A stretch of DNA of 64,000 nucleotides, taken from Macrostomum lignano. Its lineage: Eukaryota. The stretch lies in NCBI GenBank assembly GCA_002269645.1, contig NIVC01002144.1:1-64000 (forward strand), read 5' to 3'. The notes below the pieces were generated by a model. That model was not told the origin of the DNA. It worked only from the letters and a program-made list of their open reading frames with translations, and did no database searches. Positions 5,488 through 64,000 of the stretch are shown in pieces. Made by a program: the position numbers and the translations under genes. The stretch's first letter is position 1, and the number at the start of each line of letters is the position of its first letter.

Positions 5488-5515
5488 GATGCAGCTTTCC
5501 CTCGAAATTTCGGAG

Positions 5516-6512: not shown

Positions 6513-6554
6513 AGCGATGAAAACAATAGCCGATAAAAAACAAGCTTCACTTTC

Positions 6555-7202: not shown

Positions 7203-7231
7203 GTCTAATGCATAAATATAGTTCTAGAAAA

Positions 7232-7741: not shown

Positions 7742-7746
7742 GCCAG

Positions 7747-9030
7747 TTAAGAGGAATAGTCCAGCAAAAGCTCCCGGTGCTTGGTGACCTCAATCAGCGA
7801 GTCATACAGGCACAGAGCGATCAGGGACACCGTTTCGTCCAGAGCCTGTCGGAAGCGAATCTCCAACCGCAGGTTGCCCTCCTTCTGTCCGTACCACAGA
7901 GCCGCTCCCTCTGGTGTGAGATCGAATGCAAACACCGTGCTGTTGTTGGAGAAGAGCTGGTAAGGGATCCACGGAACCGAGTTCGTGTGGCTTGCAGATT
8001 GACAGCTTTTCAGGTAGTGTAAGTATTCTCTTACAAAGGAATTGTTTTCAGGTGTGAAGGCACCGTGGCACACGGTTTCCCCACCTTTCTTTAGAGCCAA
8101 CCGGCTAAGGTTGAAGCTCTGGAACTGGAACGGGCTCGCGTGATGATGACCGTTGAATGCACGGTGGCTCACGAAGGCCAGCATGATGAACTTCGGCAAT
8201 TTTCCATGAGTGAATCCTTCAATGTTTTTAGATTGAATGCCCTGGGGTAGGATGAAGTTCTGCATTTCAGTTCGCTCGATGGGATACAGTGCATTTTGGT
8301 TTGTCAACCCCTGCTCGTGGGCCAGGCTGATGTGGGGCACCACTTTGACTCGGCGAAGATGCAAAATGCAGTGAGAGATTTCCATGCGGTATGCCGCGTT
8401 GTTTGCATTCGGGCTTCTGATGGCAAAGGCCCCATCGCTGGGCACCAGTTTGATGTGCAAGTGCAGATTGTTTAGCAGAAACACTGGGCATTGGAAAACA
8501 TCGCTGAAGAGCGGTCCCGCATACTCCATCCATCGGGATTCCCTGTGGCTCTCCGTGTGCTCTTCAGCTGCCGAGTTCGGCTCCAGGAAGCCAGCAGGGT
8601 AAAGTTTTAGTTGCTGGGCATCAGATGAGCTCATTAGTGCTTTGAAGTACGCATGGTAGGGATAGAGCTGGTCTCCACCAGATACCACTCGCTGGTTAAT
8701 GCTCACAATTACATCTGAGAAGGCTGTAGACAAAACAAAGTTTTCTGGGTGCACGTCACTGTCTCTGCGCTCGGTGATGATGCCATCTCCATCTCGAACA
8801 TCCTCCCTCAGCAAACCCCCATCCAGTCTCACAAGGCGGCAGCGAATATAAAGAAAAGAATTAAGCAAATCAGTGTATTCATCGGCAGATTGGTGGCAGT
8901 CAAATTCAATGGGGGAGTTTGCAGTAATGGAATTTACTGGGTGAATATCAACATAAGTAGCTTTTTCAATGCAGGTTTGTAGAACAGGCGTCTTAAATAA
9001 ATCAAGTCTGGGATTGAATCCGTAAGCCAT
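7747..9030 (-). CDS. Double jelly-roll major capsid protein (PY/hexon), 427 aa, intact ORF
   Basis: LDLFKTP..QT.IE...YVDIHP...PIEF...YTDLLNSFL N-terminus; G.LPK...AFV...AFNG...SPF.FQ.FNL; FAFDLTP...GNLRLEIRF C-terminus. Confidence 0.93.
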   Translation of the reverse strand: MAYGFNPRLDLFKTPVLQTCIEKATYVDIHPVNSITANSPIEFDCHQSADEYTDLLNSFLYIRCRLVRLDGGLLREDVRDGDGIITERRDSDVHPENFVLSTAFSDVIVSINQRVVSGGDQLYPYHAYFKALMSSSDAQQLKLYPAGFLEPNSAAEEHTESHRESRWMEYAGPLFSDVFQCPVFLLNNLHLHIKLVPSDGAFAIRSPNANNAAYRMEISHCILHLRRVKVVPHISLAHEQGLTNQNALYPIERTEMQNFILPQGIQSKNIEGFTHGKLPKFIMLAFVSHRAFNGHHHASPFQFQSFNLSRLALKKGGETVCHGAFTPENNSFVREYLHYLKSCQSASHTNSVPWIPYQLFSNNSTVFAFDLTPEGAALWYGQKEGNLRLEIRFRQALDETVSLIALCLYDSLIEVTKHRELLLDYSS

Positions 9031-9032
9031 GT

Positions 9033-9326
9033 CTATGACAGAGAGTCGAGCACGCGTTTCACAGTTTTCTTGCTGACTTTTCGCTTTCGCTTTCCTCCGC
9101 CTGCTGCATTCTTCTTTGCTTTCGTCTTCCTATTCTTAAGCTTTTTCTTACTAGCCTTGCTCGGATTTCTTTCATTGCACCTCTTATTGGTGCGATCTCT
9201 ACCAGTTGCCTTTCGGGTGTACTTCTTCTTCAATCGTTTCGGACTTGCTTCAGTATTTCTTTTCCGCCTGACATTGCTATGCGTTGAGAATGATGATGTA
9301 GCCGCTGGAGGAGGCTGGTATGTCAT
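9033..9326 (-). CDS. Lys/Arg-rich basic core/DNA-condensing protein (PW/pVII-like); start uncertain
   Basis: Highly basic ORF between mCP and MCP. An alternative ATG at 9418 hits TGA after 12 codons, so the 5' part may be disrupted. Confidence 0.6.
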   Translation of the reverse strand: MTYQPPPAATSSFSTHSNVRRKRNTEASPKRLKKKYTRKATGRDRTNKRCNERNPSKASKKKLKNRKTKAKKNAAGGGKRKRKVSKKTVKRVLDSLS

Positions 9327-9414
9327 GATCCCCGGAAAGCTCCCACAGCCATAGAGTGCAGGCTTTTCGTGTCCTGTCCTCACCCCGAATATTGCTGGAT
9401 CAGCTGCTGGTAGT

Positions 9415-10242
9415 TCATTGAATGCGTTTCTCTCGAATCTGAACTGTGAGCAGAACAGGGCTGAGTGTCTGGGCAATCAGTGGGCAACCATAGATGTCAC
9501 GCAGCTGAACTCGAATGCTGTGAAGAAGACTGATTCGTTGAATCGGGAAGAATATTGTTTTCTTAAATATTTTTGTTTGATAGTTGCCCCATTCAATGCC
9601 GGCTTTCATTCCAACTGTTCTCAACAGGGAGCCCAAGTTGCAATTAGTTGACTCAACGACACTGCAGTGTACATTGATTAAGCTGGTGCGCGGACAGCCA
9701 ATGCAATGCTCGGACACGCGGCTCCCTGGCTGGATTTTCACAGCCTGGTTTCCAAATCCCAGCCAATGCAGAATTTTGCTAGATGGAAGAAACAGCTCTG
9801 CTCTCGCAGTGTTGTTGTGCACCACAGTTCGTGAGTTGCGGATTTCGAACTTCATACCAAATTCCCTGTTGCCACTACGCCCCATCAGGCCGGACTCATC
9901 AGCCTCCATCTCAGACTCCCTGTCACTCATCGCATCAAAGAACAGCGAATCAGAGTTGGCCAGCAGCTGATTCAAACGCTCCACCAGCTCCTCCACTCTA
10001 GCAAAGCGTCCGGGTTGAAGAACCAGGGCCTCATGCTCTCTTCCATCTGAGACAGTGAAGCAGTAAGGCTCGTCAACATTGAACCATGCAGCAGGCAGAT
10101 GGATTTCAGCCAGACCTGCCTCATAGTCCACATTTCGATCCAAGTAAATAGGTGAAGGCAGGTAAAAATTAAAGTCACTAGGAGTACCTTCAGCATGCTC
10201 ACTGTTAATCAAAATAGTTCGCATTATAATTTTAAACCTCAT
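9415..10242 (-). CDS. Single jelly-roll minor capsid protein (PX/penton); ATG at 10242 or 10224
   Basis: ILINS....TPSDF.FYLP.PI.L....YEAGLAEIHLP.AWFN N-terminus and I.VQLRD.YG C-terminus. Confidence 0.88.
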   Translation of the reverse strand: MRFKIIMRTILINSEHAEGTPSDFNFYLPSPIYLDRNVDYEAGLAEIHLPAAWFNVDEPYCFTVSDGREHEALVLQPGRFARVEELVERLNQLLANSDSLFFDAMSDRESEMEADESGLMGRSGNREFGMKFEIRNSRTVVHNNTARAELFLPSSKILHWLGFGNQAVKIQPGSRVSEHCIGCPRTSLINVHCSVVESTNCNLGSLLRTVGMKAGIEWGNYQTKIFKKTIFFPIQRISLLHSIRVQLRDIYGCPLIAQTLSPVLLTVQIREKRIQ

Positions 10243-10261
10243 GAGAAGAGATGCGCAAAAG

Positions 10262-11315
10262 CTAAACCTTTCTTAAGTCTTTTTCATCCACCCAGCCTGT
10301 CGAGTCGTAGCCGGCCCACTTCACCAGATAGCGAATTTTTCCCTTCTGCTTCTCCGTTTTCAGGATCTTCTCAATCACATACAGCCGCTGTGAGTCCGGC
10401 ACCGCCTGCAGCTCATGCTCATGAAAGAGACCCCGGATCTCCTCACCCTTCATGTCCCTAATCTTGTACATGTACGGATAGTGCTTCGGTGCCCTACATA
10501 CTACAGTGTACACCTCCTCACTCCAGTTGGCCTTGTATCCTTTGTATCCAAATTCTCACTGACTGCTTTTCACTGAATTTGGGCTTCTTTGGCTTCTTCA
10601 CAGTCTCAATGGCTCTTCCATTGTAAAGGTTCATCCAGACCTCAGTCTCATTCTCTTTGCATACGCTAGTCGGTGCCATTTTGATGCTTCTGTGGTAAGT
10701 GTTGTTGTACGACTTGACCAGCTTTGGCAACACATCAACCCAATGCAAAGTGCTCTTGTGGGTGAAATATCGCCACATTTTGTTTTTCAAAGTTCTATTC
10801 CACCTCTCTATGATGGCTGCTTTTTGCTCACTATTAGTGGGGAATGCCAAAATTCCCTTGCTTATACAGAACTCCCGAAAATTGGTATTGATGAACTCTT
10901 TTCCTTGATCCGTGCGGACTGTGCGTGGCTGGCGCTTTGAGCACCTCAGGATACTCTCGAATGCGAACTTGACTTCCGCAGCTGATTTGTTTTTTAGAGG
11001 CCTGGCCCAACCAGATTTAGAGAGGACATCTATACATGTGAGAGTATACTTGTAGCCGTTATTGTATTTTGCAAATGGTATCATCTCAACCAGGTCAAGT
11101 TCCCACTGATCATCAATAGCCCTAACAATGATTGGTGCCATAGGATAGCGTCTCCTAGCTTGCTTGTGCAGTGTGTACACAGGCTGCTCAGTCAGCCATT
11201 GCCCGATGCTCTTTTTAGATTCACGATTATCCTGTGTTTTCTTGAGCTCGTGCAGAAGCTTTGAGACACCCGAGAAACTGGCAGGCTGAGCAGGGTTGTA
11301 GTAGATCTTTTCCAT
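10262..11315 (-). pseudogene. RVE (DDE) integrase with C-terminal chromodomain, frameshifted at about 10543-10552
   Basis: MEKIYYNP..P.SFSG start at 11315; catalytic WELD, RTDQGKEF and IERWNRTLK motifs. The second frame continues KGYKANWSEEVY...IRGLFHEHELQ...IEKILK...YLVKWAGY (chromodomain) to the stop at 10262. Confidence 0.92.
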
Positions 11316-11356
11316 TATCAAAATCAAGCTGAATGAAAGCCTGCAAAACAATTTTT

Positions 11357-11503
11357 TTAAGTTCTTTTCGCGGTTTGCTCATTGAGCCACTGTTCAATGC
11401 TCTTTCAATTTTTATGCCCACCCTCTTCTCTAACTTGATGCAGCAGCTTTGAGCAAATTGAAAAACTAGCTGGTTGGCCAGGAGCAAAGTAAATTTTTTC
11501 CAT
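11357..11503 (-). other. Diverged duplicate of the integrase N-terminal ~45 codons, with an internal TGA
   Basis: ATG 11503 reads MEKIYFAPGQPASFSICSKLLHQVREEGGHKN*KSIEQWLNEQ; the integrase reads MEKIYYNPAQPASFSGVSKLLHELKKTQDNRESKKSIGQWLTEQ. Confidence 0.85.
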
Positions 11504-11762
11504 TTTCTCAAGAAACAAAAGTCAACAGTCTAATTTTTTCTTAAGCACAAGAACAAAGGAAAACAATTTTTTATGAAAAGAAGCTTTTATATTTTTCAGC
11601 GGATAAGAAACAATAGGTTGCATGATTTTCTTAAATGGAGAGACTTAATTAAGTTTTCTGGATAAATGAGCAATGTTAATTATAGAAATTGTTAAATGAG
11701 CCAATTTAAGTCTGTCACCAGTCACCAAAGTTCTTCAAAGCACTTCTTATTCTTCTTCTTCT

Positions 11763-12506
11763 TCACTCCTCATCCTCATTGAGGCGCAGTCTCATGGCAT
11801 TCTGCCTGCGCAGCGGATATGGTTGCTTGCGCTTCCTGACGTTCTCGACCGCAGCTGCTTCAGCCCGGAAGCGATACCAGACTGGGTCCTGCAGCAAATC
11901 CGAATCCTGCTTTGGGATAAAGCCAGCTGCAGCACTTGTCACCGGTAGAGGCGTTGATGCGACCACTTCATCGTCGATGCGCAGAGTGCTTGATTGGACG
12001 CCCTCATCCTCAGTCTTCGCAAGCCGCACGATGTCGTCCTTGTTGCTGTTGTCATCATCATCACCGTTGCTCTCGCTCGAAGATCCCGACTCCAGCTCAT
12101 ACACATCAGAAATTTGGCGTGGGGCAGACAGCTGCTCGTCGATCCATGCAGCCTGCTCCCACAGTTTTCGCCACAGAGCTGGTGCCAAAGCCACAGTGTT
12201 TCGCTTCAAAAATTCTTCGCAACAATCTTCTGGAAGCCGTCTTAGCCAGATGATGCCGTTCTTAACCTCAACAAACTTATCAAAACCGAGTTTGATGATC
12301 CTCTGTTGCCCGCCTAGGGCCGCCTTCACGAGAGTTGGCTTCAGTTCTTTCAACTTCTCCCATTGTCGGATGTTGAGGTTAAATCCGGGAACGCCAGGTT
12401 TTAAACTCGCTGTGCTGCCATGTCGATAAAATTTCCGAATCGCAATAAACTGTACTTCTTCATACTCTTGTACTTGAAGTTTGTAGCCTTCTCCAATATC
12501 GACCAT
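11763..12506 (-). CDS. Tandem PC4/Sub1-like ssDNA-binding protein with acidic tail and basic NLS
   Basis: DIGEGYKLQVQEYEEVQFIAIRKF...KPGVPGFNLNIRQWEKLK matches the PC4 fold pattern. A second degenerate repeat follows (LGFDKFVEVKNGIIWLR...VALAPALWRKL...IDEQL). RKRK near the C-terminus. Confidence 0.8.
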   Translation of the reverse strand: MVDIGEGYKLQVQEYEEVQFIAIRKFYRHGSTASLKPGVPGFNLNIRQWEKLKELKPTLVKAALGGQQRIIKLGFDKFVEVKNGIIWLRRLPEDCCEEFLKRNTVALAPALWRKLWEQAAWIDEQLSAPRQISDVYELESGSSSESNGDDDDNSNKDDIVRLAKTEDEGVQSSTLRIDDEVVASTPLPVTSAAAGFIPKQDSDLLQDPVWYRFRAEAAAVENVRKRKQPYPLRRQNAMRLRLNEDEE

Positions 12507-44289: not shown

Positions 44290-46610
44290 TAGTTGTGCAT
44301 CTGGGTTGCTGAACGTCTGGGTCTCGGTCACCGCCTGCCACAGCCGAGCCCTCTGGAAGCATTTCTGGAAGCGACCAGAAGTCAGGAAGCATTTTGCCGA
44401 CTTCCAAAAAGTCCGCATCGAAAGAGAGGAACAGATGCTGATGGATCTGGTCGACAACATTGAGACACCTAGCAATGAAGCAACACGCAAGGAATGGAAA
44501 TACACACTCGCCAGGGAACCCGGCAACGAAGAAATTGAAATGGCCATCCGAGAAATGAAGGACAGCAGCCCGGGAGAAGACGAACTACGACTCAGATGCC
44601 TCAAAGCAGCTCCCGACGTCATTAGAGAGGAACTAAGAGACCACATTCGCTTCATGTTTGCACAGCGAGTATGGAAGTGGAACGACGAAGAAAAACTCGG
44701 GATTATCATCCCATTATTCAAAAAAGGCGACCGCCAAGACCCCAACAACTACCGCGGCATGTGTCTCCTGCCCATGGTGAGCCGTATCCTCGCGAGAATA
44801 CTGGCCACGCGCATCCGAGATGGGCGGAGGCGATTGGAATACTGGACGACAATCAAAACGGGTTCCGCAACGGCAGATCTACAGCCGACAGCGCCCAGAT
44901 ATTCGTACGCCTCCAGAAGACATCGAAGAATACCTCGCAGCCAAACGAGCACAAGGAGACTGCTACGTCGAAGACGAATGGATCGCATGCTTACTTGACC
45001 TCAAGAAAGCGTATCCCCGGGTCTGTAAACCTCTCCTCTGGGCCCATGAGCGTTATAGAGAAATTGCAGGACCTTCACGAGTTCACCAACTACAAAGTCA
45101 AAATAAAAAACCAGTCCAGTGAAGAGTGGAAACCAGAGAGAGGATTAAGGGAAGGCTGCCCAATATCCCCGGTGCTGTTCAACATGATACAACAAGCATG
45201 CATGCGGAAAGTCGAAGAACACCGCGGAAAGCGGCAGCAAAACTACGAAACAGAAACTGTGGGATACGATGGAACTGGTTACCAGGCCACTCTCTGCCCC
45301 CACAAAGAGCAAACCAGTACAACTCAGAGACAAAACATCACAAGTTCTCAACATCCCTGTTCGCGGATGACACGACTCTGCATGGACAAAGAACAGAAAT
45401 CAATGAAGGCCTAAACATAACGAAGGACTGGATGAAGAAGTTTGAATAGCAGACGAACGATAAAAAACAGGAGATCTTGGTGTTTGGAACAAACGAAGGA
45501 AGCAAAGTTAGGATGCTAGGCTCATGGTTAGACAGAAAACACGACATACAGCAAAGAATACAGAAGGCGGCGAAAGGGTGGGCATCCATCCGCAAACGCT
45601 TCATCAAATGTCGCCTGAAAAAAAACGACTCAAGCAAGAGTAGTCGAGGCCTGTGTAGAGAGCATCCTCTTATTCCATGCCACTCGGCCTTTCTGGAAAT
45701 CAGAAACCCAGACACTATAGTAATTCGTTGACAAGATCTACAGATATATCTGGAGCTCAAAGAGACAAGAACCGTTACGGCAGATGGAAGAACATGGAGT
45801 TAACAGTCAGGACATCAGAAACGAACTGGGAGTGGCTTCGATCAGAGTAAAAGTTGAACAAGCTCACTTGAGGCGAATAGGCCACATCCTGCGAATGCCA
45901 GACGAACGGCAAATTAAAAGAGCTATACTCGGGTGGCTCACTCCACTAGAAAACATCTGCAAGAGAAAGAGAAAGAGAGACAACACCATCGCCTACTGGC
46001 AAAAGCTCCTACGAGAAGCCGGAATAGAACCATCAACAGTGGAACGACTTGCACTCGACCGTGAAGCCTGGAAGCACCTGGTCCAAGAACGAGTCGAACA
46101 CATGCAAAACTGGGAAAAACAGCAAGGCAATCGCAAAGAACGAACCGCGCCCACCAGGCCCCCACACAATACCGGCAGCAGCAGAACCAAAAGCAGACCA
46201 CAGAAGACAACACACAGATGTGAATACCCCGACTGTGGCAAAATCTGCTTGAGAAGGGAGGGCTGGCCATCCACCAGAAACGGCTGCGCAGAGTGTACGC
46301 CGATCCCGTCACATTCAATTGCACAAAGTGCGAAAAGACATCCGACAAGAAGCGACACTACTCAACCACAGAAAGACTTGCCAAGGAGAAACAGAAGTGA
46401 ATGCCAAAACAGTAAGGTGCACCAGATGCGATACGATGGTATCGAAATCCAATCTGGCGAGGCATAGGCGAACATGCATAAGGAGCGGCGGCAGTCGAGA
46501 TCGAAAGTCAAAAGGGAGGAACATCGACGACCACACCGGCGACGGCAACGCTAACGGCGACAACAAGGGCAACAACAACAGGAGACAGCCAGACGGGTCG
46601 GACAGCTGCT
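44290..46610 (+). mobile_element. 5'-truncated, frameshifted non-LTR retrotransposon (RTE-like RT plus C-terminal C2H2 fingers), copy 1
   Basis: IIPLFKKGDRQDPNNYRGMCLL, LDLKKAYPRV, GLREGCPISPVLFN and SLFADDT motifs split over several frames; C-terminal Cys/His finger motifs. Confidence 0.9.
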
Positions 46611-47149
46611 AGAAAGTATCGTGCAGAGACAGCAAAGTGTGAAGACTGTGGTCGGGTTTTGTCCAAAACTAATATGGCAAGACGTGCAGGGGAACGTAGC
46701 TATCGGTGTCCCATGCCCTTCGGGTGAGAACGGCAAGAAGAATAAGAAGAAGATGGTGATGATGATGCTCTTCTATGAGGCCAACCTTCTCGCGGTGGAG
46801 AGCGGACGGGGAAAACCCCGGCAAAGAGGCTACAAGGGAAAGACGCTCGGAGGAAGGCAAGGAGGAGACTCCAACCGACCGACCGGCCCTTTTCAGCAAC
46901 GACATTCGGAGGTAGCCGAACCGAATGTCGAGATAAATTAGGCCAAACCCAACAGGGTAGACGAGGGAAGGGACAACAGACAGAGAAGCGAAGAGGTCGA
47001 ATGGAGACTGCGCACGATTGAGCCGAACCCAGGACCGAAAACGGAGAAGGAGAAAACACAGAGAGGAAAGAGGAGAGCACGGAGGAGGCAGCGGAGAAGA
47101 GACGAGAAGAGAAACGAAAGAAGAGAGAAAGCGGAGAATAAAGAATGGA

Positions 47150-49345
47150 GGATCACCACATGGAATTTGAGGAGCGCAAATATCGCAGGCAGACGTTTCG
47201 GAAAGATCGTGAAAAAATCGTAAGAGAGAAGTGGCAGATGACACTAATTAGCGAGTTGAGAGCTGAGGGAGGGGAGTAAAGACATATCAGCACGGAAAGA
47301 CACAGCTGCACCTAATACACTGCGAAAGCTGCGAAACTCAAATACTGAAGATGGTAAAGAAAACCCCCATAACAAAACACTCAGGTCGCGAGAAGAGAGA
47401 ACGGGATACTCACAAGGGAGATCACTGACGAAGAGATTGACATAGCCATCAAATGTATGAAGGACAAAACACCTGGGCAAGACGAGATACGCATTCGGTA
47501 CATAGCGGAAGCATCACCAAAAGTGAAGAAAGCAGCATACACAAGGATCAAATTCCTTTTTGAACAAAGCGCGGAAGATTTTGACGAGAGTGAGAAAATC
47601 GGATTAAAATCATCCCCTTGTTCAAGAAGGGAGACCGGAGAGACCTAAACAACTACCGAGGAGTATGCCTAACTACCAATATTAAGCCGAATCGTCGCAA
47701 GGATACTAGCCACAAGGATAAGGATATGGGCAGAGAGCCTAGAATTATTCGACGACAACCAATGTGGTTTTAGGAGCGGAAGATCAACAGCAGACAGCAC
47801 ACAAATCTTCGTCCGAATACACGAGGACCTGACAGAGTCCAGAGAAGCACGAAGAATGAACGGAGACAAGAACCTCGAGCAAGATGAGATGGCAATTCTG
47901 ATGGACCTAAACAGGGCATACCCGAGAGTATGCAAACCGATGAATGGGCATTGCTCTCACATCTAAGGGTGCCGGAAGAGACGATACGTAAAATACAAGA
48001 CCTACACAACAACACACTATACCAAGTGAAGGGCGGGGAAGGAGTGAGCGAAGGTTGGACACCAGAACGCGGTCTCAGAGAAGGATGCCCTACGTCACCG
48101 GCTCTATTCAACATTTATCACCAAGCGTGCATGAGAATGGCAGAGAGAGAAAGACAAGAAGAAGCCAAGAAGTCAGGAAACATATGGGGAATTGAGTGGA
48201 GCTGGCCACCAGGACACTCATTACCGCCACAGCGCAGATACCAATACAACTCTGAAAACCGAATCCATTTGTTTCAGACCTCCCTCTTCGTGGACGACAC
48301 CACCTTAATAGGGAACCGCGGTGAACTGACCGATGGCCTCGGAATAACAAAAGAGGTCATGCAACGGTTTGAGGAGAAGACCAACGACCAGAAGCAAGAG
48401 GACCTCCTCTTCGGAACACTAGAAGGAGGCACGGTGAGGATGCTAGGAAGCTGGCTAGACGGAAAAGAAGACGTGAGGCAGAGGATCGGCAGAGCAAATA
48501 AGAGCTGGAAGACAATAAGGAAACGCTTCGTAAAAGTGCAGACTGTCAAAGAGAACACAAGGGCGACTGATTGAAGCCTGTGTCAAGAGCACACTTCTGT
48601 ATCAAGCCAACGTGAGCCCGTTCCACCTGTCCCAAATAAAGAAAATGCAGCGATACATGGACAGAATGTATCGGTTCGTCTGGAGCTCTAAAGTGAAGGA
48701 ACCAATAAGAGGAACATCAGAAGAAAACCAATCAGAAGAAAAGGGGGTGAATATGCAAGATATCAGAAACGAACTAGGCGTTGCATCGGTGAGATCAAAG
48801 ATTGAACGCAAATATCTCATCCGTGTTGGGCACGTATTACGCATGCCAGCCGGGAGACAGACCAAAAAGCAGTTTTAGGCTGGTACAAGAGGCTGGAAGG
48901 AATCGGGAAGAGAAGACAACGGAGGAAACAGACAATTGAATATTGGAGGAAATTGCTACGGGAAGCAGGAATCGAATCAAAGAGCGCAGAAAGACTTACA
49001 CCAGAACGATCGACTTGGAGATCGATTATGGAAGCGAGGAAGAGAGAAATGCGAGAATAGGAGGAACGTCAAGGAAAAAAGGCTGAGGGAAGAAAGCGTA
49101 ATAACCCGAGACAGAGATCCCACCCACCGGCAGAAACGGAAAAGGAACCGGAAGTTATACTGGAAGAGAGGGGAAGAAGGAAGGAGAAGAGAACGGAGCT
49201 CAAATGCGAATATGAAGGATGTGAGAAAATCTGCAAGAGTAAAGCGGGACTAGTGATTCATGAGAAGAGAATGCACCGCGTTAGGGACGCACAAGTGATG
49301 TTCGAGTGCAGCAAGTGCAAGAAAACATTCACGCAAGAAGCTGTT
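47150..49345 (+). mobile_element. Related decayed non-LTR retrotransposon, copy 2, with most of the APE endonuclease deleted
   Basis: TWNLRSANI (APE N-terminus), then MKDKTPGQDEIR, NNYRGVCL, GLREGCPTSPALFN, SLFVDDT and CEYEGCEKICKSKAGL.IH zinc fingers; several stops and frameshifts. Confidence 0.88.
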
Positions 49346-50127: not shown

Positions 50128-52457
50128 TAAGCTCTACACACGGTTGAACAGCAGAACGACGATCTAGGATCCTACGGCCGCAAATCCAGCCTCCTCCTAT
50201 AGAAAGCACTCACCTGTTGAATCCTCAACAGAGATGTACAGATTAGGCTTGCAGTCCCATCTAGGGCAGATCTACGTTTGCACGAGTCGTTAAGTGACGA
50301 CCTCCTCGACTGTTTGACGTTCCTTAATCGCTAGTTCTATTTCCGTTCGTGTTATGAAAATTTGAGAAACGAAATCCGAACGAAGTTGGAGCCAACAAGC
50401 AAACGAAGTTGGATGGCTCAGAGACGCAACTCGAAAAACGGAGATGCTGATCAGTAAAACACGAATAAGCATGTTTGAAATCATTTGACTTCATTTTTAC
50501 TCAGGTCTTCAGAGTGAAATAACAAAATAATATCTGCTTGTTTCTATCGAAATAATTTTGCTTCAGAATATGCTTCCGAAACAGTGGTTAAACTGGAAAA
50601 GATTGTCTTCTGGTTGAAATAAATTGTCTCAAGTGCGTTTGTCACAAATTAGCTGCATTAAGATCGTGCTTGTTAATCACTCGAATCTGTCCATCTGTCA
50701 AACCTTTCAAATTCTTTTGAAACAAGGCGTCAGCATGAATGCGTTGAAATTTCTAATTTTTCATAATTTTTTGTAGTCTTTTCTATTGGAGCACCATCAT
50801 TTTTAAATAATCAAAAATGCCCGAAAGCCGCACCAACTACATGTACCTAGAGAACGTTCATTGTCGTTTTTTATATCTTTTAGTGTTAAATGTTCGGTGA
50901 CCGTCTGATGAAGCACCGTTCTCCTTAAGACCACCAACCATTCAAGCAATGGATACTAGAACTGCTAACTTTTATAAATCAGCACTAGTGTCTCCAAGAC
51001 GTGCGGGGTTTGTTTGAGACCCTAGGCAGTTACAGCTGGATTCAATCGAAGCCGCCAATGGTCAAGCACTTTGAGCTTGAGTCGCCGACTAAAATCATTT
51101 TGAGCTAGGGGTGGATGCTCGCTTATTGTACTCTAGAAAATTACAGCATTGTTTGTTTATAGAGCCGGTTGAAGCTAAAAAATTGAAGACAGAATAATGA
51201 AGGGAAGCTTCTATAAGATTCATTGATTACGTATTTTTAACTTTGAGGCTGCTCTGTTGATCATAAAACTTGCGTTCATAAAATTTATAGGATCGACCTG
51301 GTCTTTGGTCAAACACTTTATCAGTGGCCATATTGGGGCTTGCGAGGGCTGGATAACCCTAAGCAGCTTACAACATGGCGAACTGGAGCTCAAATAAGTA
51401 TTGAGATGTATGAGATCTGTATTTGCGAATATCTGATCGCCAGAACGGCAGGTGTGCCAAATAGAAAATTTCAAAATATATGTAAACTTTTTTCAGTTTA
51501 AATTAGCCCTGAAAGAAACATTTGAACAGGTTTTAAAAGAAAAATGTGTAAAACTATAACAATTACGAGCGTAACTTGAGATTGGTGACATGACCGTACA
51601 GGTTTCAACCTCCGCTGATGTCATCCCCCTACTAAGACAAAGACTACCTGGTTCCATCTTAACATAATCTTCGTATGATAAAGTAGCCCTTTTGGGGCTT
51701 GTGCCTAAAACATGGGGTCAACCCGGTCAATCCCAGGACACAGATCGAGAGCGTAAATGCCTGATGATTAGAAAGTCCACCCTTAGAAAGTACACCCAGC
51801 GTGGTCCCTACAATAGTTCCTAAATATATTAGATTAGAAATGATCCTTGTAGGAGTTCTAACTCCTACATCGATGCGTGTAGCTGTTCCCCCCCCCTCAT
51901 GACCGCTCTGCCGCCATGGCCAACAACCCCTCCTGCACTACAAATATACACGATCTTGTACCCCGAATATCTTGTATCTCCGGTTTTGTCCTTTGTTCCA
52001 CCGCTGACCGTTGTCTGAAAGCAGAAGACAACCGGTGTTTTCAACATCACAAACTATCGTGTTATATAATCCTTATAGCCCGTACAGACCGCTTTCACGT
52101 TTTTTTGGTTTGCAGCAGTAAGAATTGAATTTTACATTTTTACACCCCTTACTTTCCGGTGTAACTTGATCTTTTAATGTATTTTTAAATAGGCGTCATA
52201 AGAAAACCTCGCGGGCTCTAATGATCATAAAACCGTCGACCATTCTACTAAATTTATTACATGTAGTTTAGTCGATCGATTTAACGGCTTGAAGGCTTGA
52301 AGCTAAGCGAGGGCTTAGTTAGGGATAGCCACAGACCGGAGCCATATTCTCGTCTTGCTTAAATTAAATATTGATTGGCCACTCAATCAATATTCGGAAT
52401 ATTGTGGTTCCCCAAAGCGTGTTGAAGTGCAGAGGTTGAACCGCACGGCAACCACAC

Positions 52458-52833
52458 CAGGGGCGTCGCCATGGATTTATGGCCGAAGGGGGGGACAAAG
52501 CCAAGAATTCTACATGTGCATTATTTTCAGAAATCGGTGTTGTCATCAGTCATTTTATCGCCGCAGGCACTTATTTTGGCCCCTCAGACACTCATTTTGG
52601 CCCCGCAGGCACTCATTTTGGCCCCGCAGACACTCATTTTGGCCCCGCAGGCACTCATTTTGGCCCCGCAGACACTCATTTTGGCCCCGCAGACACTAAT
52701 TTTGGCCCTGCAGACACTCATTTTGGCCCCGCAGGCGCTATGTTTTCTCACCCTTCAGCAAAATTATTGATTTCCATAACGGGTCACAAGGTTCATGGGG
52801 GACATTTCCCACCCCCCGCTGGCGACGCCCCTG
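52458..52833. mobile_element. hAT-type MITE carrying a 21-bp internal tandem repeat
   Basis: 14-bp TIR CAGGGGCGTCGCCA / TGGCGACGCCCCTG; flanking 8-mers AACCACAC and AACCATAC (7/8 match, TSD); internal (GCACTCATTTTGGCCCCGCAG)n. Confidence 0.88.
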
Positions 52834-54259
52834 AACCATACCATGCATTAAGTAAGGCTATTATACCAATATTGATGGGCTGCAGAGGGCAGAAACGAGT
52901 CGAGCTATAACGCCGAGGATTGTTAGCTCGTTTCTGCCCGATTCAGCTTGTCGGAACTGAATACAAACTGTTAGAACGAATTGGAAGCAAACTATAGTGT
53001 CTGATTTGCTTGCAAAGTGTCGTTTTAGTAAGCGTGGTTGTCGGAACTGAATGTACATTTCACCAAGCACGACCATGCATAAACCGTTTGGAATTGAATG
53101 ATTTCAAATATTTCAACATTGACTGCACCACATTTAACAAATTAAAATAGTATAGCATTTCGCAAGCCATATTGATATTACGAGAAAGCAATTTAATAAT
53201 CAGTCGGGAAACCCAGTCCTAGAGAGATTTTTCGGTACTTTCTAGCTTTGGAGCGACCAATTTATTGATCCGAGCGCCCAGTCATTTCCAGTGTTACTTG
53301 TATCGCATTGGCTGCAAATACATGTAGACGCACACATTCAACATGGAAGCCAGCGAGCTGAGCAGCGAGCTTTTGGAAGAAAATGGAGAATCTTTGTCAC
53401 TGCAGATGAAGCGCTAGAAGATCGAGCAACATGCACAACATGTGCATATGTGCCATGCACAATAAGCAATAGCCTACACAAGCAGTTAATCACTTGTTGT
53501 ACGTCGTTGTGCTTGGGAGGACATGCGGAGATGCTGGTTCGGAACTCGCCAGAAAACATAAAACGGAGGCAGGAATTCACCTAGGTGGCTGACTGATTTG
53601 ACTTAGTTTAGAGCCAACTGGATAATCCGGAGACCAACACAAATATATCGGCGCGGGTTACAAGATATGAAATCGCGCAAGTGCATGCCGCTCCAGTTTG
53701 AGATGGGCATCCATTTTATACACATTGGCATTCTCATTTGTTTGACCCCCCGCCGCCGGTGGGGTGTCTTCGCGTGGTTAGCAACGGCGGGGGTTTTGAG
53801 CAATAAAATCTGGGACAGTCCTCTACATGAATCTGGTTAGGCTGGTTTCGCCTTCTTGGGCAGCTCCAGGTTGAATATGAGTCCGTGGGCGGGCCGTCTG
53901 ATTCTCCTCCAGTTTTCGCCAGTTCTGACGCATGCCAAGGGCCGATCACTCTATAACTTCGTTTGTTGTTCGGGCCTCTTCTCAGTTTGCTTCTCCCGGC
54001 CGGTTTGAGCGCCATTGTGCATGCCTGCGGCGGGGTGCTACTCACAGGAATGAAAGAGGCTTTATTAGATTCGGTAATTCAGATTTGAGTTTACAGTTGA
54101 TTATATCTTAGCTGTTTCTGTTTGCCCTTCTAATAGCTAATCTGGGGGTTCCATTGTGCTTTTCTGCCTTGCACTTTAACTGCGCCTAAGCATTTTACAA
54201 TTTTCTACCCATCTTCTGGCAAATTAAGGTCAAAACTTATAGAGAAGTTCCAATTCAAG

Positions 54260-57950: not shown

Positions 57951-58027
57951 GCCCTTAAATCTCAAATTTAGACTTAATTTCTCCTGAACTTCCCTTTCAA
58001 TATTCTCTTAATCATTAGTATAAGTAT

Positions 58028-58400
58028 CCCGCCTGGATAAGTGGTCCGGCAGTTTGTCCGTATACACGTCCGGGTGTCATCTGGGGTTGTAATGTATTTT
58101 TCCCATTTGATTCGTCCGGAAAAAACCGGAGGAAAAGTTTAAAATCGGACCAAAATGTCTGGAAAAAAACCGATTGGTCCGTTTGAAATCCGGACTGTCA
58201 TCCGAAAACTTGTCCGGAAGTTCATCCAGAATTAACCGGACCACATGGCGGGTTATTTTCCGGACAAAACCGGATGACTGCATCAGACGCGTAAACCGGA
58301 AAACTACCCGGATCAAAAAGCGGACGAAAACCGGGCAAAGAGAGATTCACGTGATCCGGACAAAAATCCGGGAGAACATCCGGATGGAAAGCGGAAGTAC
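58028..58400. repeat. Terminal/subterminal repeat region with about 15 CCGG-core motifs
   Basis: Recurrent TCCGG/ACCGG/CCGGA in both orientations. Confidence 0.75.
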
Positions 58401-59005
58401 ATACTTAGTACACTGATGAAAGTCACGCTGACTTTAATTCATGGCGAGGCCTTTAAATGCAGACGCGAAATCCAACGAGATTTGTGTTGAAATGTTTTAA
58501 ATAAAAAAGAAGCTTTACAAAGACATATTCACGACTGGTTTCCAGTAACATTTTTTGTTTCCAAGTGGCACAGCTGAAGCTGCTTGTAGTTATGCTGCAC
58601 GAACACCCAAAGCAGGGGCTTAAACCGGCAAGAACACTTTGTATTTTACGAACATTCATCATCATCACACCATCGACTCGACACATCTCACAAAATGCTA
58701 ATATAGTAGGTGCAAAAAGTCACACTGACCACAATCACCTCTCAAATCACGAAATACAAAAAGTTGGTGCATAAAGTCACACTGGCCACAATCCCCTTAC
58801 CCCAATCCTCAAAGGGCCAGAACCACCCTGCTCCAATATTCTCAAATGGCCAGAACCACCCTGCTCCAATATCCTCAAATGGCCACAATCCCTTTCCCCC
58901 AGTCCTCTCTCCGTCTATCTCGAGATCTGTCCATGTCTTTGATCTGTCCCCGTCAGTCAGCTCTATCGATCACCAGCAATTCACGACCCTGTTCGTCCCT
59001 GATCA

Positions 59006-60933
59006 TCAATCGTTCAGCATCTCCAGCAACAAGTCACTTGGACGACTGTCGCCGTCCACGTCGCCTGCGCTGAGAAGCTGCGTCCCAGTGTTATGAGACT
59101 CCTCAGTCTGTTCGGTAATTATGCGCAGAACATGTTCTGCAGAGGTGGTAGCCTTCGAGCGAGATGACTGGCCAGGTGTGCGGGCCGCAGTCGAACGCTT
59201 GGGTCGGCTGCGCTTCGGCAGTCCCAGCTGCAATCTCGCCGTCTCGCCGCACCGAGTGAATGCGCGATGCAGTTCGTTGCGGTAAATTGGCACCTCGGCG
59301 TTCTGCAGCCACTGCCTCGCGACAGCAACTTTGGCCGGGTTCGCCGGCGCCGAAACGTACCCAGCAATTCTTCGGCCTGACAGGGATGAGTTCGCCAATT
59401 CTTGCGACGTAAAGACAGCCCTAAAGACAGCACGCAGTAGCGCCAAGCGCGTAAAGCGCCGCATGGCAACTGCGTCTAGGTCGACCGCCTGCTGATCTTC
59501 CATCGCCTTCTTATATTCTTTGTGTCGGTCTTCAAGTTCAGACCGGAGTCGCAAAGGTACAGAAAAAAACTTCTGGCTGTCGGAAAGGGCGACCAGTCCG
59601 CCGGTAGCAGAGCTAGTGGCGGTCCCTTGCTCCGCGTCACATGCGCGGATTAACGCGCGCGTTTCGGCAACAGACAGGTTGCGATCAGCGGAGAAGGTTG
59701 CCTGGTCGCCAAATGCGTCATCGTCAGCAGACTCGTCCGCGGAGGAGTGCGCGCTAGAAACAGCGTCACCAAAGGTATCATCGGGGCGCACATGTGATGC
59801 AGCTGCAGCAGCACCTGAAGTGGTTGCACTTGCGGCCGGCAAAAGGCAATTTGACGCCCTGGCGAGCAGCGCGTTGGCGGTGTCGACATTACGCAGTAGG
59901 CAATTGTTGCGCGCTTCGGCCTGCTCGACCTGCATGACCAGCTTCCGCTCCATTTTGGCCTGCACACTCGTCTTGTGCAGGAGCGTGCGGTTCTGTGCCA
60001 GCAGGTTGGTCTCAGAAGTACGGAGGAGCTTAAGTTCGCCACCTGCGTATGTATTTGAATTGGAAGGATTGACAGGTGAATCAGCTAACTTATGGTTTGC
60101 TTCTGCTTATATATGTGGACGGAATGCGTCAGTTGATGAATCTAGATGCATGCAGAATACGACAATGCAGATCGATCTGATGACCCCATGAGTAACTTAA
60201 TCAGAAACTTACGCAGAGATTCGGTCAAGGCCTTCTCCCTTTGGAGCTCAAGCACGAGACCGCGACAGGAGCTGCAGGACCGCGGCAGCTCGGCGGGTGC
60301 CGCGTGGACGTTAGTCAAGCTGGCAGCACCAGCAGCCTCCCTTTTCTTGTCGAATGGGCCCTTTATTAGTGTGCCCAGATAGCGCCGGGCCGTGCTACGC
60401 TTGCTCCGAGCTGTCACGACAGCGACTACGGCGCCGGTGTTTAGAGGCAGCTGCACATCCGACCGATGCGAAATGATGGCACTGGTGGACATCAGGCTGG
60501 AGTCTGTTGACACTACCTCTGTTCGCTGGTGGAAGTCGGTATACTGAAATAAAAAAAACCGGGCCTTGGCTTCGGCTTTAAACGGCACCATTTCAGGTTC
60601 GTTATCTTCTTCAGCGGCGAGTCGATTCCGCGGAATCGGAACTTCTTCCGAATGAGCAGTGCTATCGATGGCAGTCGGATTAGCGACGCTTAATCCACCT
60701 GGCGGATTTAAATCCGCATCTGCCACAGCTGCGGCGGCGGCGGCGGCGGCGGCGGCTCCAGTCGGGACGTTGGCACCCGAATCGGTTGCCGTAGCCCGAG
60801 CCGACACCTTGGCGACACTGAATGGTACTCCTATTTTCTTAGAAACACCAGACGGCTTCTTTATTGTTGCATGCGTTTTTTTTGCCTCTTTACGTCTTTC
60901 TTTCTCCGAAGCGTCGCGACACGTGCGGCCCAT
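59006..60933 (-). CDS. Transposon accessory (TnpA-like) protein with coiled coil and BEN domain, 585 aa. Exons: 60933-60213 and 60042-59006
   Basis: Phase-1 intron C|gtaagt...acgcag|GT joins two ORFs in frame. ALLRAVFRAVFTSQELANSSLSGRR...NPAKVAVARQWL...FTRCGETAR fits the BEN pattern. An in-frame upstream ATG at 61008 is an alternative start. Confidence 0.75.
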
Positions 60934-61179
60934 GATGGCAGTTCTCGTGCACGCTGGAAAAGATATGACATGAGGTTTGCATTTCCGCGAGATCTGTACA
61001 GGAGTCATCGTCTCTGATCCTCGAGCACTATAGGTGACTGAGTACTTGGTTATGTACAACGGGTTCGTAAGGAGTTAGCAGCGGGACGGAATGAAATAAC
61101 AAACAAGACTGACGGATATCACAAAGCCAAAAAAGCGCCGGTCCTTTTATATGTGTTTGCACTACAGCAACCTCGACAC

Positions 61180-61235
61180 CATTGCACTTCAGCAACCTCG
61201 ACACCATTGCACTTCAGCAACCTCGACACCATTCA
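61180..61235. repeat. Short 25-bp tandem repeat (about 2.5 copies)
   Basis: CAGCAACCTCGACACCATTGCACTT repeated. Confidence 0.8.
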
Positions 61236-61490
61236 ACTAAAAAGTTTAAACTAAAACTAAATACTAAAAATTCAACTAAAACAGAAATCGTCAACACAAG
61301 TAGAAAAAGTGTGGAAGGATGAAACAGCATATGAACAAGAGTTGCGCAGCAGTTCTTCTAATATAAAAAACGATTTCACCTGTCCCCACATGTGGGGAAA
61401 TATTTCTATCCCTATCCCTATGATATCCCTATCCCCATCCCTATTTCAACTAGTCCCCATGGCGCGACCATGGTGGGGAACCAAAGCAAT

Positions 61491-62253
61491 TCAATCCTTC
61501 TTTGCAGACTTAGGTTTCGGCGCATCATAGGGAGCAAGGCCGCGAAGGGGCCGCATACGGCGCCTGCCTACTCTCATCATCTCCACCGGAAGTGGTGGCG
61601 GACTGGGGGGCATGTCGATGGAAAAAAAGTTTGGCGCCTGGATAATCGGACGATGCCGATGGCGCCCATGGCGCTGCAGGCGCTGGTTGCGAACTTCGGC
61701 GGGCAGGTTGGCGTACCAGGCTTCACAGTCTGGGCAAGTTTGCGCAGGAAGGCGCTGCCTGTCATACCGCCGGCGTGAGTCGAACGTCGGCGGCGGCTCG
61801 TCCGGAAGCCTATTGTAGTCAGCAGCGTACTGCTTGCGTACTTGCGTCAACTTGCGTACTGCTAGCGACTGGCGTCGGACGGCGGAGCTCTGAGGGCGAC
61901 AGGACTAATTCCTGGATCTCCTCCTGCGCAACTGCATCTTCGGACTCCACGGCTTGTGGAGACGAGTCCCAGGCCTGACTGTCCAACTGCTGGACATGGG
62001 CGACCGGTGAGCCTAGAGTAGTATGTGTGTCGTCCGACTCGACATCCGAATCTACCTGGGCGGCGGGTGAGCCTAGAGTAGTATGTGTGTCGTCCGACTC
62101 GACCTCCGAATCTACGGAATCTCCTAGTAGCTCATCAACCCCTTCGCCGATAAGTCCGTCCAAAATCAAGGACCAGTCTGGAGTCCCGGATAATTGACCC
62201 GTGCGCCGGGACATGTAGCTGCAGTGTAAGGCGGTGGAACCCTTTGTACTCAT
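61491..62253 (-). CDS. CtIP-like: Acidic disordered protein with a CtIP/Sae2/Ctp1 C-terminal domain; frameshifted by a 10-bp duplication at about 61840-61850
   Basis: RRRYDRQRLPAQTCPDCEAWYANLPAEVRNQRLQRHGRHRHRPIIQAPNFFSIDMP aligns with human CtIP as I recall it ([58 protein letters not shown]). Confidence 0.85.
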
Positions 62254-62855
62254 ACGTGCTAAGCAATTACTTGAACAACCGTTTGCAACCCGTTAGTGCA
62301 TGTACAAGAGGGCTGCAGAAAAGAGGAAAAACGTATACATAGTTACAGTGCAGCGGCAAATACAACTGTATTTCTAATTAATCAGTTATACACATACGTA
62401 TACGTAAGTAAACCAAACATTCAGTAATATGGAAACCGGTAAGGTATGAAATAGTACTGCAACATTCGTGCAGACGTATCAATAATAATTTAAGTGATTA
62501 TGAAATTATACTGCCTCATGTGTAATGTTTGCGAAACGAAATATTTATTATAATAATGAGATAATTAGTAGAACAATTTCAGTGCAGCTGACGTCTTCAA
62601 TTATATACTCGAGTATTGGGGGATCACAAGCTGAGAGGAAACAAATTCCAAATTTCGATCGATGAAACATCGAATCATCGATGAAACAAAATCGTCCGAC
62701 ATGCAAAAAAAGCGACAGTCGCCACAATATTATAAAGGGAATTATGTGCTTGAAATGAAAATTTTACACTACTTTCATGGACCGCTATTTTCAATTCCAT
62801 TGATATTATACTTATACTATTGAGGCGGTGATGCTTAAACAGAAGCAACAGCTAA

Positions 62856-64000
62856 TTAATACTGGAAGCTACTGGAAGCCGATCTGCGGGTGTGGCATAA
62901 CGCATATTTTGTGTCCGAAACGACGCACGACCCAACGATGGCAGTGGCGTGAACTCGAACGGTGCGCTCATGTGGTAACGGACCGAATGGATTGACTAAG
63001 AGGCCTCGGATGTGCGCAAATCTGGCACCTCGGTTCTCCGAGTTGGCATGTACGGCACACAAGGCCTCCAGTGGGTCCACGACAGCGTCCTGTACGGGTA
63101 GGATGTGAAGGTTGACATACACCTCATCGTTGTCGCACTCGATTGCTAGAACGCGGCCGAACTGAAAGCTCGTCGGCTGGCATCCGGCAATGGCTACAAA
63201 GGCAGATGACGCCCGCGTCTCAATCTCCGGTAGATACTCCTCGAAATACAACCCTGACGGGAGAGACGCCGAACGCCAGCCGTGGGCCATGTTGTTAGGA
63301 CGCCGTAGTAGAATGCCAGACGCCGCGCGCATGCATGTCGTTCTGTGCCGCGCGCGTGGCTGCTGGTCGTTGTCGCGGAGAAGCTCCTCAGCCTGCATGA
63401 CTGCCAGCTCGCACTCAACGGCTCCGACAATCTCCACATCCGTGCGGCGGGACCCGTGAATCTGGCGACGCAGTCTGGTATGCATCGATTCAAACAGCCC
63501 GGCGGATTGACGGTTCAGAGGACCTGCCAGTATGGCATACGGCAGCATGTGGCAGCAGACTTGATGGGCGTTGTACGCTCGTATGACAGAAATCGCAGCG
63601 AATAAAGGCGCGACAAGTTCGCGTGAAAGTGTCTCAGCCCGATTTCAACGTGGCGCAATTCTGCACGCGGCGCACCTTCTAAGGACATCCAGAAGATGCA
63701 CGTGGAGAGGATTAAAATGTGCCAGTAGTGTTCCTCTGGCAGGAAGTCATCAAGGACGAAAGGCGCGAACGCCAACAACCACATTGCGTATTCGTGGCCG
63801 CGCATGTGTCTGATGTCCTTGAGAAGCCTGACAGTGTGACGCTGAACAGTGCGAGGAACGCGAATGCGCCGAAGACGCTGGTCGATGTGGCTCAGCCGCG
63901 CGTGCAGGTCCGGACAATTTGTGGCGCCTCGATCCGGTTTTTCATGACGCACGAGGAACGGCTGGTACAAAATATTGCGTACCAGGCCGGAGCACAACTG
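62856..64000 (-). pseudogene. EnSpm/CACTA transposase, C-terminal part, frameshift at about 63585
   Basis: IRVPRTVQR...HMRGHEYAMWLLAFAPFVL...LY then, in the next frame, AYNAHQVCCH...GPL...SAGLFES...IHG. This matches the WKA.E...YN.H...GPL...SAF.FE pattern of animal EnSpm transposases. Confidence 0.88.

Follow-up and report, generated by a model that had tools for sequence, protein, structure and literature searches.

A CtIP-like gene apparently maintained by selection in a DNA transposon lineage of Macrostomum lignano

Background

Pack-type elements of the CACTA and Mutator groups carry fragments of host genes, usually in non-autonomous elements in which the fragments decay. Eukaryotic cut-and-paste transposons are thought to leave the repair of the breaks that they make to the host. 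TET/JBP dioxygenase genes have been described in fungal transposons of the Kyakuja, Plavaka, EnSpm, hAT and Harbinger families (PMC12730594). We analyzed 64,000 nucleotides of the 764-Mb Macrostomum lignano assembly (contig C2144:1-64000, henceforth the window) and searched that assembly throughout. The window contains a dead copy, limited to its 3' two-thirds, of an M. lignano DNA transposon that is young and was recently mobile. Between its transposase gene and a downstream gene, this transposon encodes a predicted protein whose last ~110 residues resemble the C-terminal domain of CtIP/Sae2.

As in the TET/JBP-carrying transposons, a gene of apparent host derivation lies beside the transposase, within the termini, and has persisted while the lineage diversified. 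The cargo is different, being a fragment of a double-strand-break repair cofactor and not a chromatin- or DNA-modification enzyme. As in Pack-type capture, the module probably started as a single captured host exon, whereas here autonomous elements carry it, it begins with a start codon of its own and it bears signs of strong purifying selection. Host-derived accessory genes under selection are known from other DNA transposons; what is unusual is that the cargo is a double-strand-break repair cofactor domain. A sequence-only reading of the window had proposed that a CACTA/EnSpm transposon carries a CtIP/Sae2 module and knew of no described transposon with one. Our full-text literature searches likewise found none. 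The transposon lineage appears to keep, under selection, part of the cofactor that licenses Mre11-Rad50 hairpin opening and blocked-end clipping.

Homology of the transposon gene to the CtIP/Sae2 tail

We assessed the homology with profile searches in both directions. The window copy alone scores 17.3-17.9 bits against the Pfam SAE2 model (PF08573; cut-off 19.8; E 0.007-0.011) and aligns only to profile positions 7-39, the CxxC half. All of 11 diverse family members match the model at E ≤ 1 (best E 9.1e-7). Against the six-frame translation of the genome, the model gave 28.8, 22.0 and 20.4 bits for family loci, and its matches were limited to CtIP-like loci. The SAE2 assignment expected by the sequence-only reading is thus seen above the cut-off in other members of the family, and the window copy by itself falls below it. 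A profile of the 11 members was then compared with 1.84 billion representative proteins and returned 387 matches at E ≤ 1e-3, proteins with both CtIP_N and SAE2 appearing at E ~1e-12. Leaving aside one M. lignano, one metagenomic and one repeat protein, the top matches align at their extreme C-termini, and Pfam annotation of eight top matches identified CtIP_N plus SAE2 in six and SAE2 alone in two. The third-best match (P0005) was rejected as a false positive, a repeat protein whose score sums 16 weak repeats. A word-based homologue search with the 256-aa transposon protein found none, and a PDB sequence search with the domain profile returned only noise.

In the alignment of the 11 members, C34, C37, H59 and R60 are invariant and R58 is nearly so; the corresponding motifs of the window copy read CPDC (CxxC) and RHRHR (RHR). 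The last ~110 residues match, block for block, the tail of CtIP/Sae2/Ctp1/COM1, which acts as a cofactor to the Mre11-Rad50-Nbs1/Xrs2 endonuclease. Relative to canonical CtIPs, (S/D)FDRVP aligns with DYNRLP, VVRKKDERRKL with RRRxDRxxL, SRHR with GRHR, NFW with NFF and FP(S/D)T with MPPS, and CxxC and RRRRP also align. The match had been described as almost residue for residue, which overstated it, as the vertebrate CtIP tail is 37% identical to the transposon domain across 61 aa (E 1.4e-5). The proposed homology itself was borne out: the SAE2 matches of 11/11 members and the reciprocal profile search indicate a resemblance beyond chance, and on these comparisons we regard the transposon open reading frame (ORF) as homologous to the CtIP/Sae2 C-terminal domain.

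The transposon protein differs from CtIP at the cyclin-dependent kinase (CDK) site (human T847, yeast S267). Canonical CtIPs, and a metagenomic CtIP-like protein (P0004) considered below, have T-P at this position. The residue is Ala in the window's subfamily (QAPNFF) and Asp in the basal subfamilies (DPNFW/F), and an S/T-P site 12 residues downstream is kept in all members. Also unlike CtIP, the protein is encoded within a transposon in dozens of copies, and its 256 residues include no N-terminal coiled-coil/tetramerization region, with a DWSxLLD-type motif and tandem acidic repeats in its place. The absence of the CtIP N-terminal domain, noted in the sequence-only reading, agrees with our searches: CtIP_N has no match in the transposon protein, and BLASTP against the host CtIP (see below) aligns the last ~110 aa only, with no similarity found to the host N-terminal part.

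The N-terminal halves are lineage-specific. A short (I/P)DWSxLLD-like motif is seen near the N-terminus across several subfamilies and is followed by tandem acidic units rich in Ser/Thr, of which the window copy has two and other subfamilies have 2-5. A GS(D/E)T core is common to the host CtIP and about half of the subfamilies and is absent from the window's. We considered whether the acidic repeats are S-[DE]-T motifs of the CK2/Nbs1-FHA type; this is true of about half of the subfamilies and not of the window's, and we retain it as a weak lead only. The basal subfamilies represented by loci L043 and L049 (contigs C312 and C1566) begin MDHWSHAASCPICRALTEENRLLRSELLRL, a CxxC followed by a leucine-rich helix. 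By eye, this start resembles the end of the host CtIP N-terminal helix (…SLTAENRRLKFALES…); BLASTP gave no significant match.

In intact copies, the gene order on a single strand is transposase, 256-aa CtIP-like protein, and the two frames of the downstream gene (ORF3a and ORF3b). In the window copy all three genes lie on the minus strand inside one terminal inverted repeat at 58028. This agrees with the earlier placement of the gene between the transposase and a "BEN gene", in the same orientation and within the terminal repeat, BEN being recognized by fold only. The gene spans 61491-62253 (763 nt) and is broken into two overlapping frames, 61819-62253 (144 aa, starting MSTKGSTALH) and 61491-61850 (119 aa, reading ...TCPDCEAWYANLPAEVRNQRLQRHGRHRHRPIIQAPNFFSIDMPPSPPP... 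and containing ...DYNRLPDEPPPTFDSRRRYDRQRLPAQTCPDCEAWYANLPAEVRNQRLQRHGRHRHRPIIQAPNFFSIDMPPSPPP...RRRMRPL...), because an 8-bp deletion at ~61848 shifts the frame. The motif residues quoted in the sequence-only reading are present exactly in the second frame. Its description of an intact intronless ORF does not hold for the window copy. Sister copies, 99% identical to the window's, read ...ASTQVRKQYAADYNRLP... through in one frame, and three have the intact 256-aa ORF.

The four lesions of the window copy are this deletion, two transposase indels and a retroelement insertion beyond the window, and this copy of the transposon is dead. Among six young copies, the CtIP-like frame is fully open in three (on contigs C862, C1411 and C73), and the C73 copy has a Cys to Tyr change within the CxxC motif. 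The lesions of individual young copies are the neutral damage expected after insertion.

Selection and co-divergence across the genome

The genome contains at least 45 loci with a CtIP-like domain, 40-99% identical to the window copy and mostly open. In most of them the C-terminus of the transposase immediately precedes the domain and/or ORF3a immediately follows it, in the same orientation, so that the co-occurrence of transposase, CtIP-like tail and ORF3, proposed earlier as a check on the module, is seen in most of these loci. At least six subfamilies contain the gene, and the gene order is conserved among them. Across subfamilies, the transposase is 37-62% identical to the reference and ORF3b 28-60%.

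We estimated nonsynonymous (dN) and synonymous (dS) divergence of the domain between subfamilies. Pairwise dN/dS is 0.07-0.29 where dS is measurable (dS up to 1.3-2.4); for loci L010 and L011, dN is 0.124 and dS 1.30 (ratio 0.10). The divergence of the domain follows that of the neighbouring transposase (Spearman 0.85, p = 0.015, seven subfamily representatives), and the CxxC and H-R residues do not vary between subfamilies with transposases of just 38-62% identity. These results speak against neutral decay, which the sequence-only reading had named as the alternative.

These values bear on whether the gene is a Pack-type passenger, a host exon picked up by chance that has no function and is decaying. 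Such a passenger would account for the frameshift in the window copy, for damaged young copies such as the one with Cys to Tyr in its CxxC motif, and for the related marine element (L051, below) and the one M. lignano subfamily without the gene. Damage in single young copies is, however, expected after insertion. The low dN/dS between subfamilies at substantial dS, the invariant CxxC and H-R, the conserved gene order and the co-divergence with the transposase all argue the other way. The dN/dS values and the co-divergence together refute a one-off neutral capture, and we consider a functionless passenger very improbable. Judged from these comparisons, the transposon lineage has long carried the CtIP-like gene in the M. 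lignano genome, and selection has maintained it there.

One further subfamily was found on contigs C1674, C3332, C2232 and C486. Its transposase is 57-60% and its ORF3b 33% identical to the reference, and the gap between the two is ~3.7 kb versus 2.8 kb in the reference.

Host CtIP and origin of the module

The gene BOX15_Mlig004387 has at least three exons and lies at three loci (C176 165187-168222, C2929 38003-41071 and C3324 48880-51380), the only CtIP-like loci without transposase or ORF3 neighbours. Its longer protein model (P0153, 481 aa) has a start that looks leucine-rich and helical by eye. A genome search found no further CtIP tail and nothing credible with the CtIP_N Pfam model, and we take BOX15_Mlig004387, on this evidence, as the M. 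lignano host CtIP. The host protein has Ala at the T847-equivalent CDK site and S/T-P, not S/T-Q, at the next conserved site. The segment in the window could itself be imagined to be the genome's own CtIP locus with upstream exons, and the domain would fit this, as nothing besides it does. The segment lies between inverted termini and is mobile as a unit, and the host CtIP is a separate multi-exon gene on the three contigs just named. This possibility, against which the sequence-only reading had cautioned, is excluded for practical purposes; we put its chance close to nil.

The transposon protein aligns with the host CtIP over the last ~110 aa (55% identity, E 3e-31). A further weak match (E 0.28) falls at the acidic DDEGSET motif, the start of the host last exon, which suggests capture of that exon. 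L051 is a 10198-bp contig of a Tara Oceans marine metagenome, from another organism, whose transposase is 47% identical and which also has ORF3a and ORF3b homologues. Its ~1 kb spacer between transposase and ORF3 is AT-rich and filled with stop codons, and has no CtIP-like profile match (best E 0.19). The absence of the gene from this element suggests that the module was added within the transposon lineage. We therefore think it most likely that the transposon gene arose when the element captured the host CtIP's last exon, which is also the simpler reading.

The phylogeny does not fall out simply in favour of capture. The M. lignano sequences all group in a single clade (100/98), whose sister is P0004, a 315-aa protein with an N-terminal coiled-coil region. 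Within this clade, the best tree places the host gene among the transposon sequences, as sister to 15 of them (99/97), which weighs against an origin in the host. This placement would be expected if a transposon copy had supplied the C-terminal exon of the host CtIP, through domestication or gene conversion. QAPNFF, common to the host and those transposon copies where the basal subfamilies have DPNF(W/F), and the absence from the genome of another CtIP-like gene or a CtIP_N match would also fit that direction. A tree that groups the transposon copies together, however, costs just 6 log-likelihood units and is not rejected (approximately unbiased test, p-AU 0.34; 120 alignment columns). Moreover, the L051 element is without the module, which means that the transposon family did not have the gene ancestrally, and P0004, the sister of the M. 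lignano clade, has a full CtIP-like layout. We consider the transfer from transposon to host improbable.

Proposed function and alternatives

The MRX-Sae2 complex processes hairpin-capped ends, and Transib and RAG1 leave hairpins on the flanks. The D..D..C(2)C..H(3)H-E pattern of our transposase is common to Transib/RAG1. In yeast, hairpin-forming Ac/Ds excision gave no revertants without MRE11 or SAE2 (PMC3299998). Our preferred reading, to which we assign a probability of about 0.6, is that the selected CtIP-tail gene of the transposon engages the host Mre11-Rad50(-Nbs1) complex (MRN) at the element's own breaks. We favour a self-supplied MRN cofactor for excision breaks since every conserved block of the tail has been kept.

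In the proposed mechanism, a monomeric "CtIP tail" would engage host MRN at breaks made by the element's own transposase. These breaks would be the donor flanks, probably hairpin-capped or transposase-bound. The tail would stimulate Mre11 clipping or hairpin opening and so lead to repair of the excision site, perhaps through homologous gap repair with the element restored. Competition with the host CtIP is an alternative within the same model; we favour stimulation. The BEN-like protein encoded downstream would probably bind the subterminal TCCGG-type repeats, a role played in En/Spm by TnpA.

Several observations weigh against this reading. At the CDK site the window's subfamily has Ala and the basal ones have Asp, and in yeast the S267A change largely abolishes the activity of a Sae2 fragment (PMC6167383). 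Loss of the oligomerization domain impairs Sae2 in vivo, which suits a competitor as well as an activator (PMC6167383). The subfamily on C1674, C3332, C2232 and C486 gave no CtIP-like match with three protein queries; it may have lost or replaced the gene. Together with L051, it indicates that the module is dispensable for transposition as such. The objection from the CDK site is softened by the Ala of the host CtIP and by the S/T-P site 12 residues downstream. A monomeric yeast Sae2 fragment still binds Rad50 and retains about one-third of the stimulation (PMC6167383).

The main rival reading is that the protein is a decoy or dominant-negative factor. It would sit on the surface of Rad50/Nbs1 to which CtIP binds and leave Mre11 inactive, so that at transposition breaks resection and checkpoint signalling are damped and end joining is the favoured repair. 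The missing tetramerization domain, the lack of similarity to the host N-terminal part and the Ala in place of the CDK-site Thr in the window's subfamily would be natural in a decoy, given that S267A and the loss of oligomerization cripple stimulation in yeast (PMC6167383), and purifying selection suits a decoy as well as an activator. The identical Ala in the host CtIP suggests, however, that this residue may not be a switch here; the Asp of the basal subfamilies is more like a phosphomimic than a dead site, and the monomeric yeast fragment retains some of its activity, as noted above (PMC6167383). A decoy seems to us possible but unlikely.

The preferred reading, engagement of host MRN at the element's own breaks, has a more specific form that we offer only tentatively and consider rather doubtful. 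The oligomerization-free tail would act as a private Mre11-Rad50 activator at the element's own excision breaks, where it would open hairpins made by the transposase or clip ends bound by it, independent of the host's cell-cycle (CDK) licensing of resection, with the Thr-to-Asp change of the basal subfamilies as a phosphomimic; gap filling would then restore the donor and make cut-and-paste transposition effectively replicative.

A module of this kind could help to explain the success of transposons in a flatworm with a repeat-rich genome. It would also offer a naturally minimized CtIP tail with which to dissect the domain without oligomerization or a canonical CDK site. M. lignano is amenable to RNA interference. 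It is also amenable to transgenesis (PMC8717057), so that with both methods the question is testable in the native host.

Boundaries, copies and mobility of the element

The element limits were defined by BLASTN against three other loci, where the alignments (98-99% identity) begin and end at identical bases. The whole element occupies positions 58028-71140 of contig C2144 and is ~8.5 kb long once the retroelement insertion is subtracted; the four copies are 98.7-99.5% identical when aligned. The coordinates of its features within the window are given in Table 1.

Table 1. Features of the transposon copy in the window (positions in the 64,000-nt window)
Feature	Position	Strand or orientation	Basis and remarks
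Target-site duplication AT, left copy	58026..58027		Right copy outside the window, contig 71141-71142
Transposon part within the window	58028..64000	minus	BLASTN against three other copies, 98-99% identity end to end, same stop bases
Terminal inverted repeat CCCGCCTGGATA, 12 bp	58028..58039	element's 3' end in gene orientation	Inverted at the opposite end, 4/4 copies
Subterminal region rich in TCCGG / GTCCGG / CCGGAC short repeats	58028..58400
ORF3b, 366-codon frame	59009..60106	minus	BEN-like helical domain at C-terminal part
ORF3a, upstream part of the downstream gene	60142..61008	minus	Ends ...LPRSCSSCRGLVLELQREKALTESLRK
25-bp tandem repeat, 3.1 copies, intergenic	61157..61233		Tandem Repeats Finder; one element copy has an extra unit (25-bp indel)
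CtIP/Sae2 C-terminal domain (homology)	61491..61835	minus	DYNRLP, CxxC, RHR, NFF, S-P, RRRxRP; stop codon 61491-61493
Frame overlap, 32 nt	61819..61850	minus	8-bp deletion ~61848 in the window copy only (four-copy alignment, ORF table)
N-terminal half of the CtIP-like gene	61822..62253	minus	ATG at 62253, PDWSLILD motif, acidic Ser/Thr-rich region
60-bp x 2 tandem repeat	61997..62115	minus	Codes 20-aa acidic unit ...VDSDVESDDTHTTLGSP...
Transposase gene, 3' part	62856..64000	minus	Runs off the window; intact copies have one 812-codon frame

The four copies share the termini CCCGCCTGGATA..TATCCAGGCGGG (CCCGCC..GGCGGG), and the "CACTA" terminal repeat reported earlier was not found, neither as CACTA..TAGTG nor as CAC..GTG. 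The flanking duplication is 2 bp in each copy (AT, TA, AA and AA). The three-base flanks differ in the window, C862 and C1411 copies, which argues against a 3-bp duplication. Both ends are packed with short TCCGG/GTCCGG repeats, and 17 of the 24 GTCCGG sites lie in the terminal 500 bp at one end or the other.

Joining the two flanks of the C862 copy gives a sequence that matches C45:436844-437043 contiguously (200/200 nt, 96% identity). The C45 site is an empty paralogous or allelic site and gives direct evidence of insertion. The site filled in C862 is also found filled on contigs C4932, C4040, C3925, C1600 and C3569, so some apparent copies are duplicated or haplotype contigs of one insertion. 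The C862 copy contains a 469-bp insertion near its 3' end (element sense ~7990-8460) with a frame (…ECLQTLQKALESEAPSQTMVYKWFGRFRSGCLELDDDEREGRP…) like the N-terminal helix-turn-helix of a mariner-type transposase, which is probably a nested mariner-derived fragment. Outside the window, a retroelement of ~4.6 kb with gag, protease, reverse transcriptase and integrase frames lies at C2144 65335-69944. It sits in the 5' part of the transposase gene of the window copy and is absent from the sister copies.

Transposase and classification

The intact transposase consists of a 162-codon first exon and the 812-codon frame. Two indels disrupt the gene in the window copy, one an insertion of 8 bp at ~63583 and the other a deletion of 1 bp at ~62911 (four-copy alignment). 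The intact 812-aa frame matched no Pfam transposase family at E ≤ 10, Transposase_21, DUF4218 and related families included, and a homologue search of 5.8 billion proteins found only two relatives. Modelling the transposase core with AlphaFold from three aligned sequences gave no usable structure (predicted local distance difference test score, pLDDT, 34). By inspection, the alignment of the three relatives shows DGF ... (F/L)DAPxRA ... GC(E/D)xCY ... H(M/Y)RGH and then E, a D..D..C(2)C..H(3)H-E pattern located upstream of the window in this copy.

The EnSpm-Mirage-Chapaev-Transib (CMCT) group is defined by D..D..C(2)C..H(3-4)H..E, and its members give 2-5 bp duplications (PMC12730594). The element resembles CMC/EnSpm elements in its motif pattern and in a 2-bp duplication that lies inside the 2-5 bp range of the clade. 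It resembles En/Spm in its dense subterminal short repeats and in a second gene that is probably DNA-binding, like TnpA. It differs from CACTA/EnSpm in its termini, which are neither CACTA nor CA..TG, in its 2-bp and not 3-bp duplication, and in matching no Pfam transposase family. The transposase therefore appears to bear a catalytic signature of the CMC/Transib type, and a "CMC-like" label is defensible. For the earlier assignment to CACTA/EnSpm, this means that the broad motif pattern stands and that membership of CACTA in the strict sense does not, given the termini, the duplication and the Pfam result.

The downstream gene

ORF3a and ORF3b are adjacent frames in intact copies, ~70 nt apart, and probably belong to a single gene in which ORF3b is the second exon. 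ORF3a adjoins the CtIP-like ORF in most subfamilies (36-47% identity) and also occurs in the marine contig L051; ORF3b homologues lie after the transposase in other subfamilies and in the same contig. Neither frame matched a Pfam family, the BEN model (PF10523) being unmatched at E ≤ 10, and a word-based database search with ORF3b returned no homologues. We modelled the C-terminal 219 aa of ORF3b with AlphaFold from a three-sequence alignment (pLDDT 60-90 over residues 34-156). When the model was compared with PDB structures, the ten best matches were BEN domains without exception (BANP, Insv, Bsg25A, NACC1 and BEND6), with probabilities of 0.85-0.99, E 0.2-0.8, target TM-scores of 0.43-0.57 and root-mean-square deviations of 2.2-3.2 Å. 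The earlier name "BEN gene" agrees with these fold matches and is not backed by Pfam or by the weak E-values; from the predicted structure, a BEN identity of the downstream gene is plausible.

Other features of the window

A Polinton/Maverick-like element lies at 118-12506. One of its frames, 1157 aa long, resembles a protein-primed DNA polymerase, and Pfam found in it only an Endonuclease_7-type insert. The other strand encodes an rve integrase (Pfam E 8e-13). Further frames resemble, by eye, a packaging ATPase, a protease and capsid proteins. Within a strongly strand-skewed region at 44671-48574, pieces of reverse-transcriptase frames (Pfam RVT_1, E ~5e-5, below the cut-off) probably represent decayed retroelements. 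A tandem repeat with a short period occupies 52355-52910; three frames are open through it, with units reading …HSFWPRR…, …LILAPQT… and …THFGPAG….

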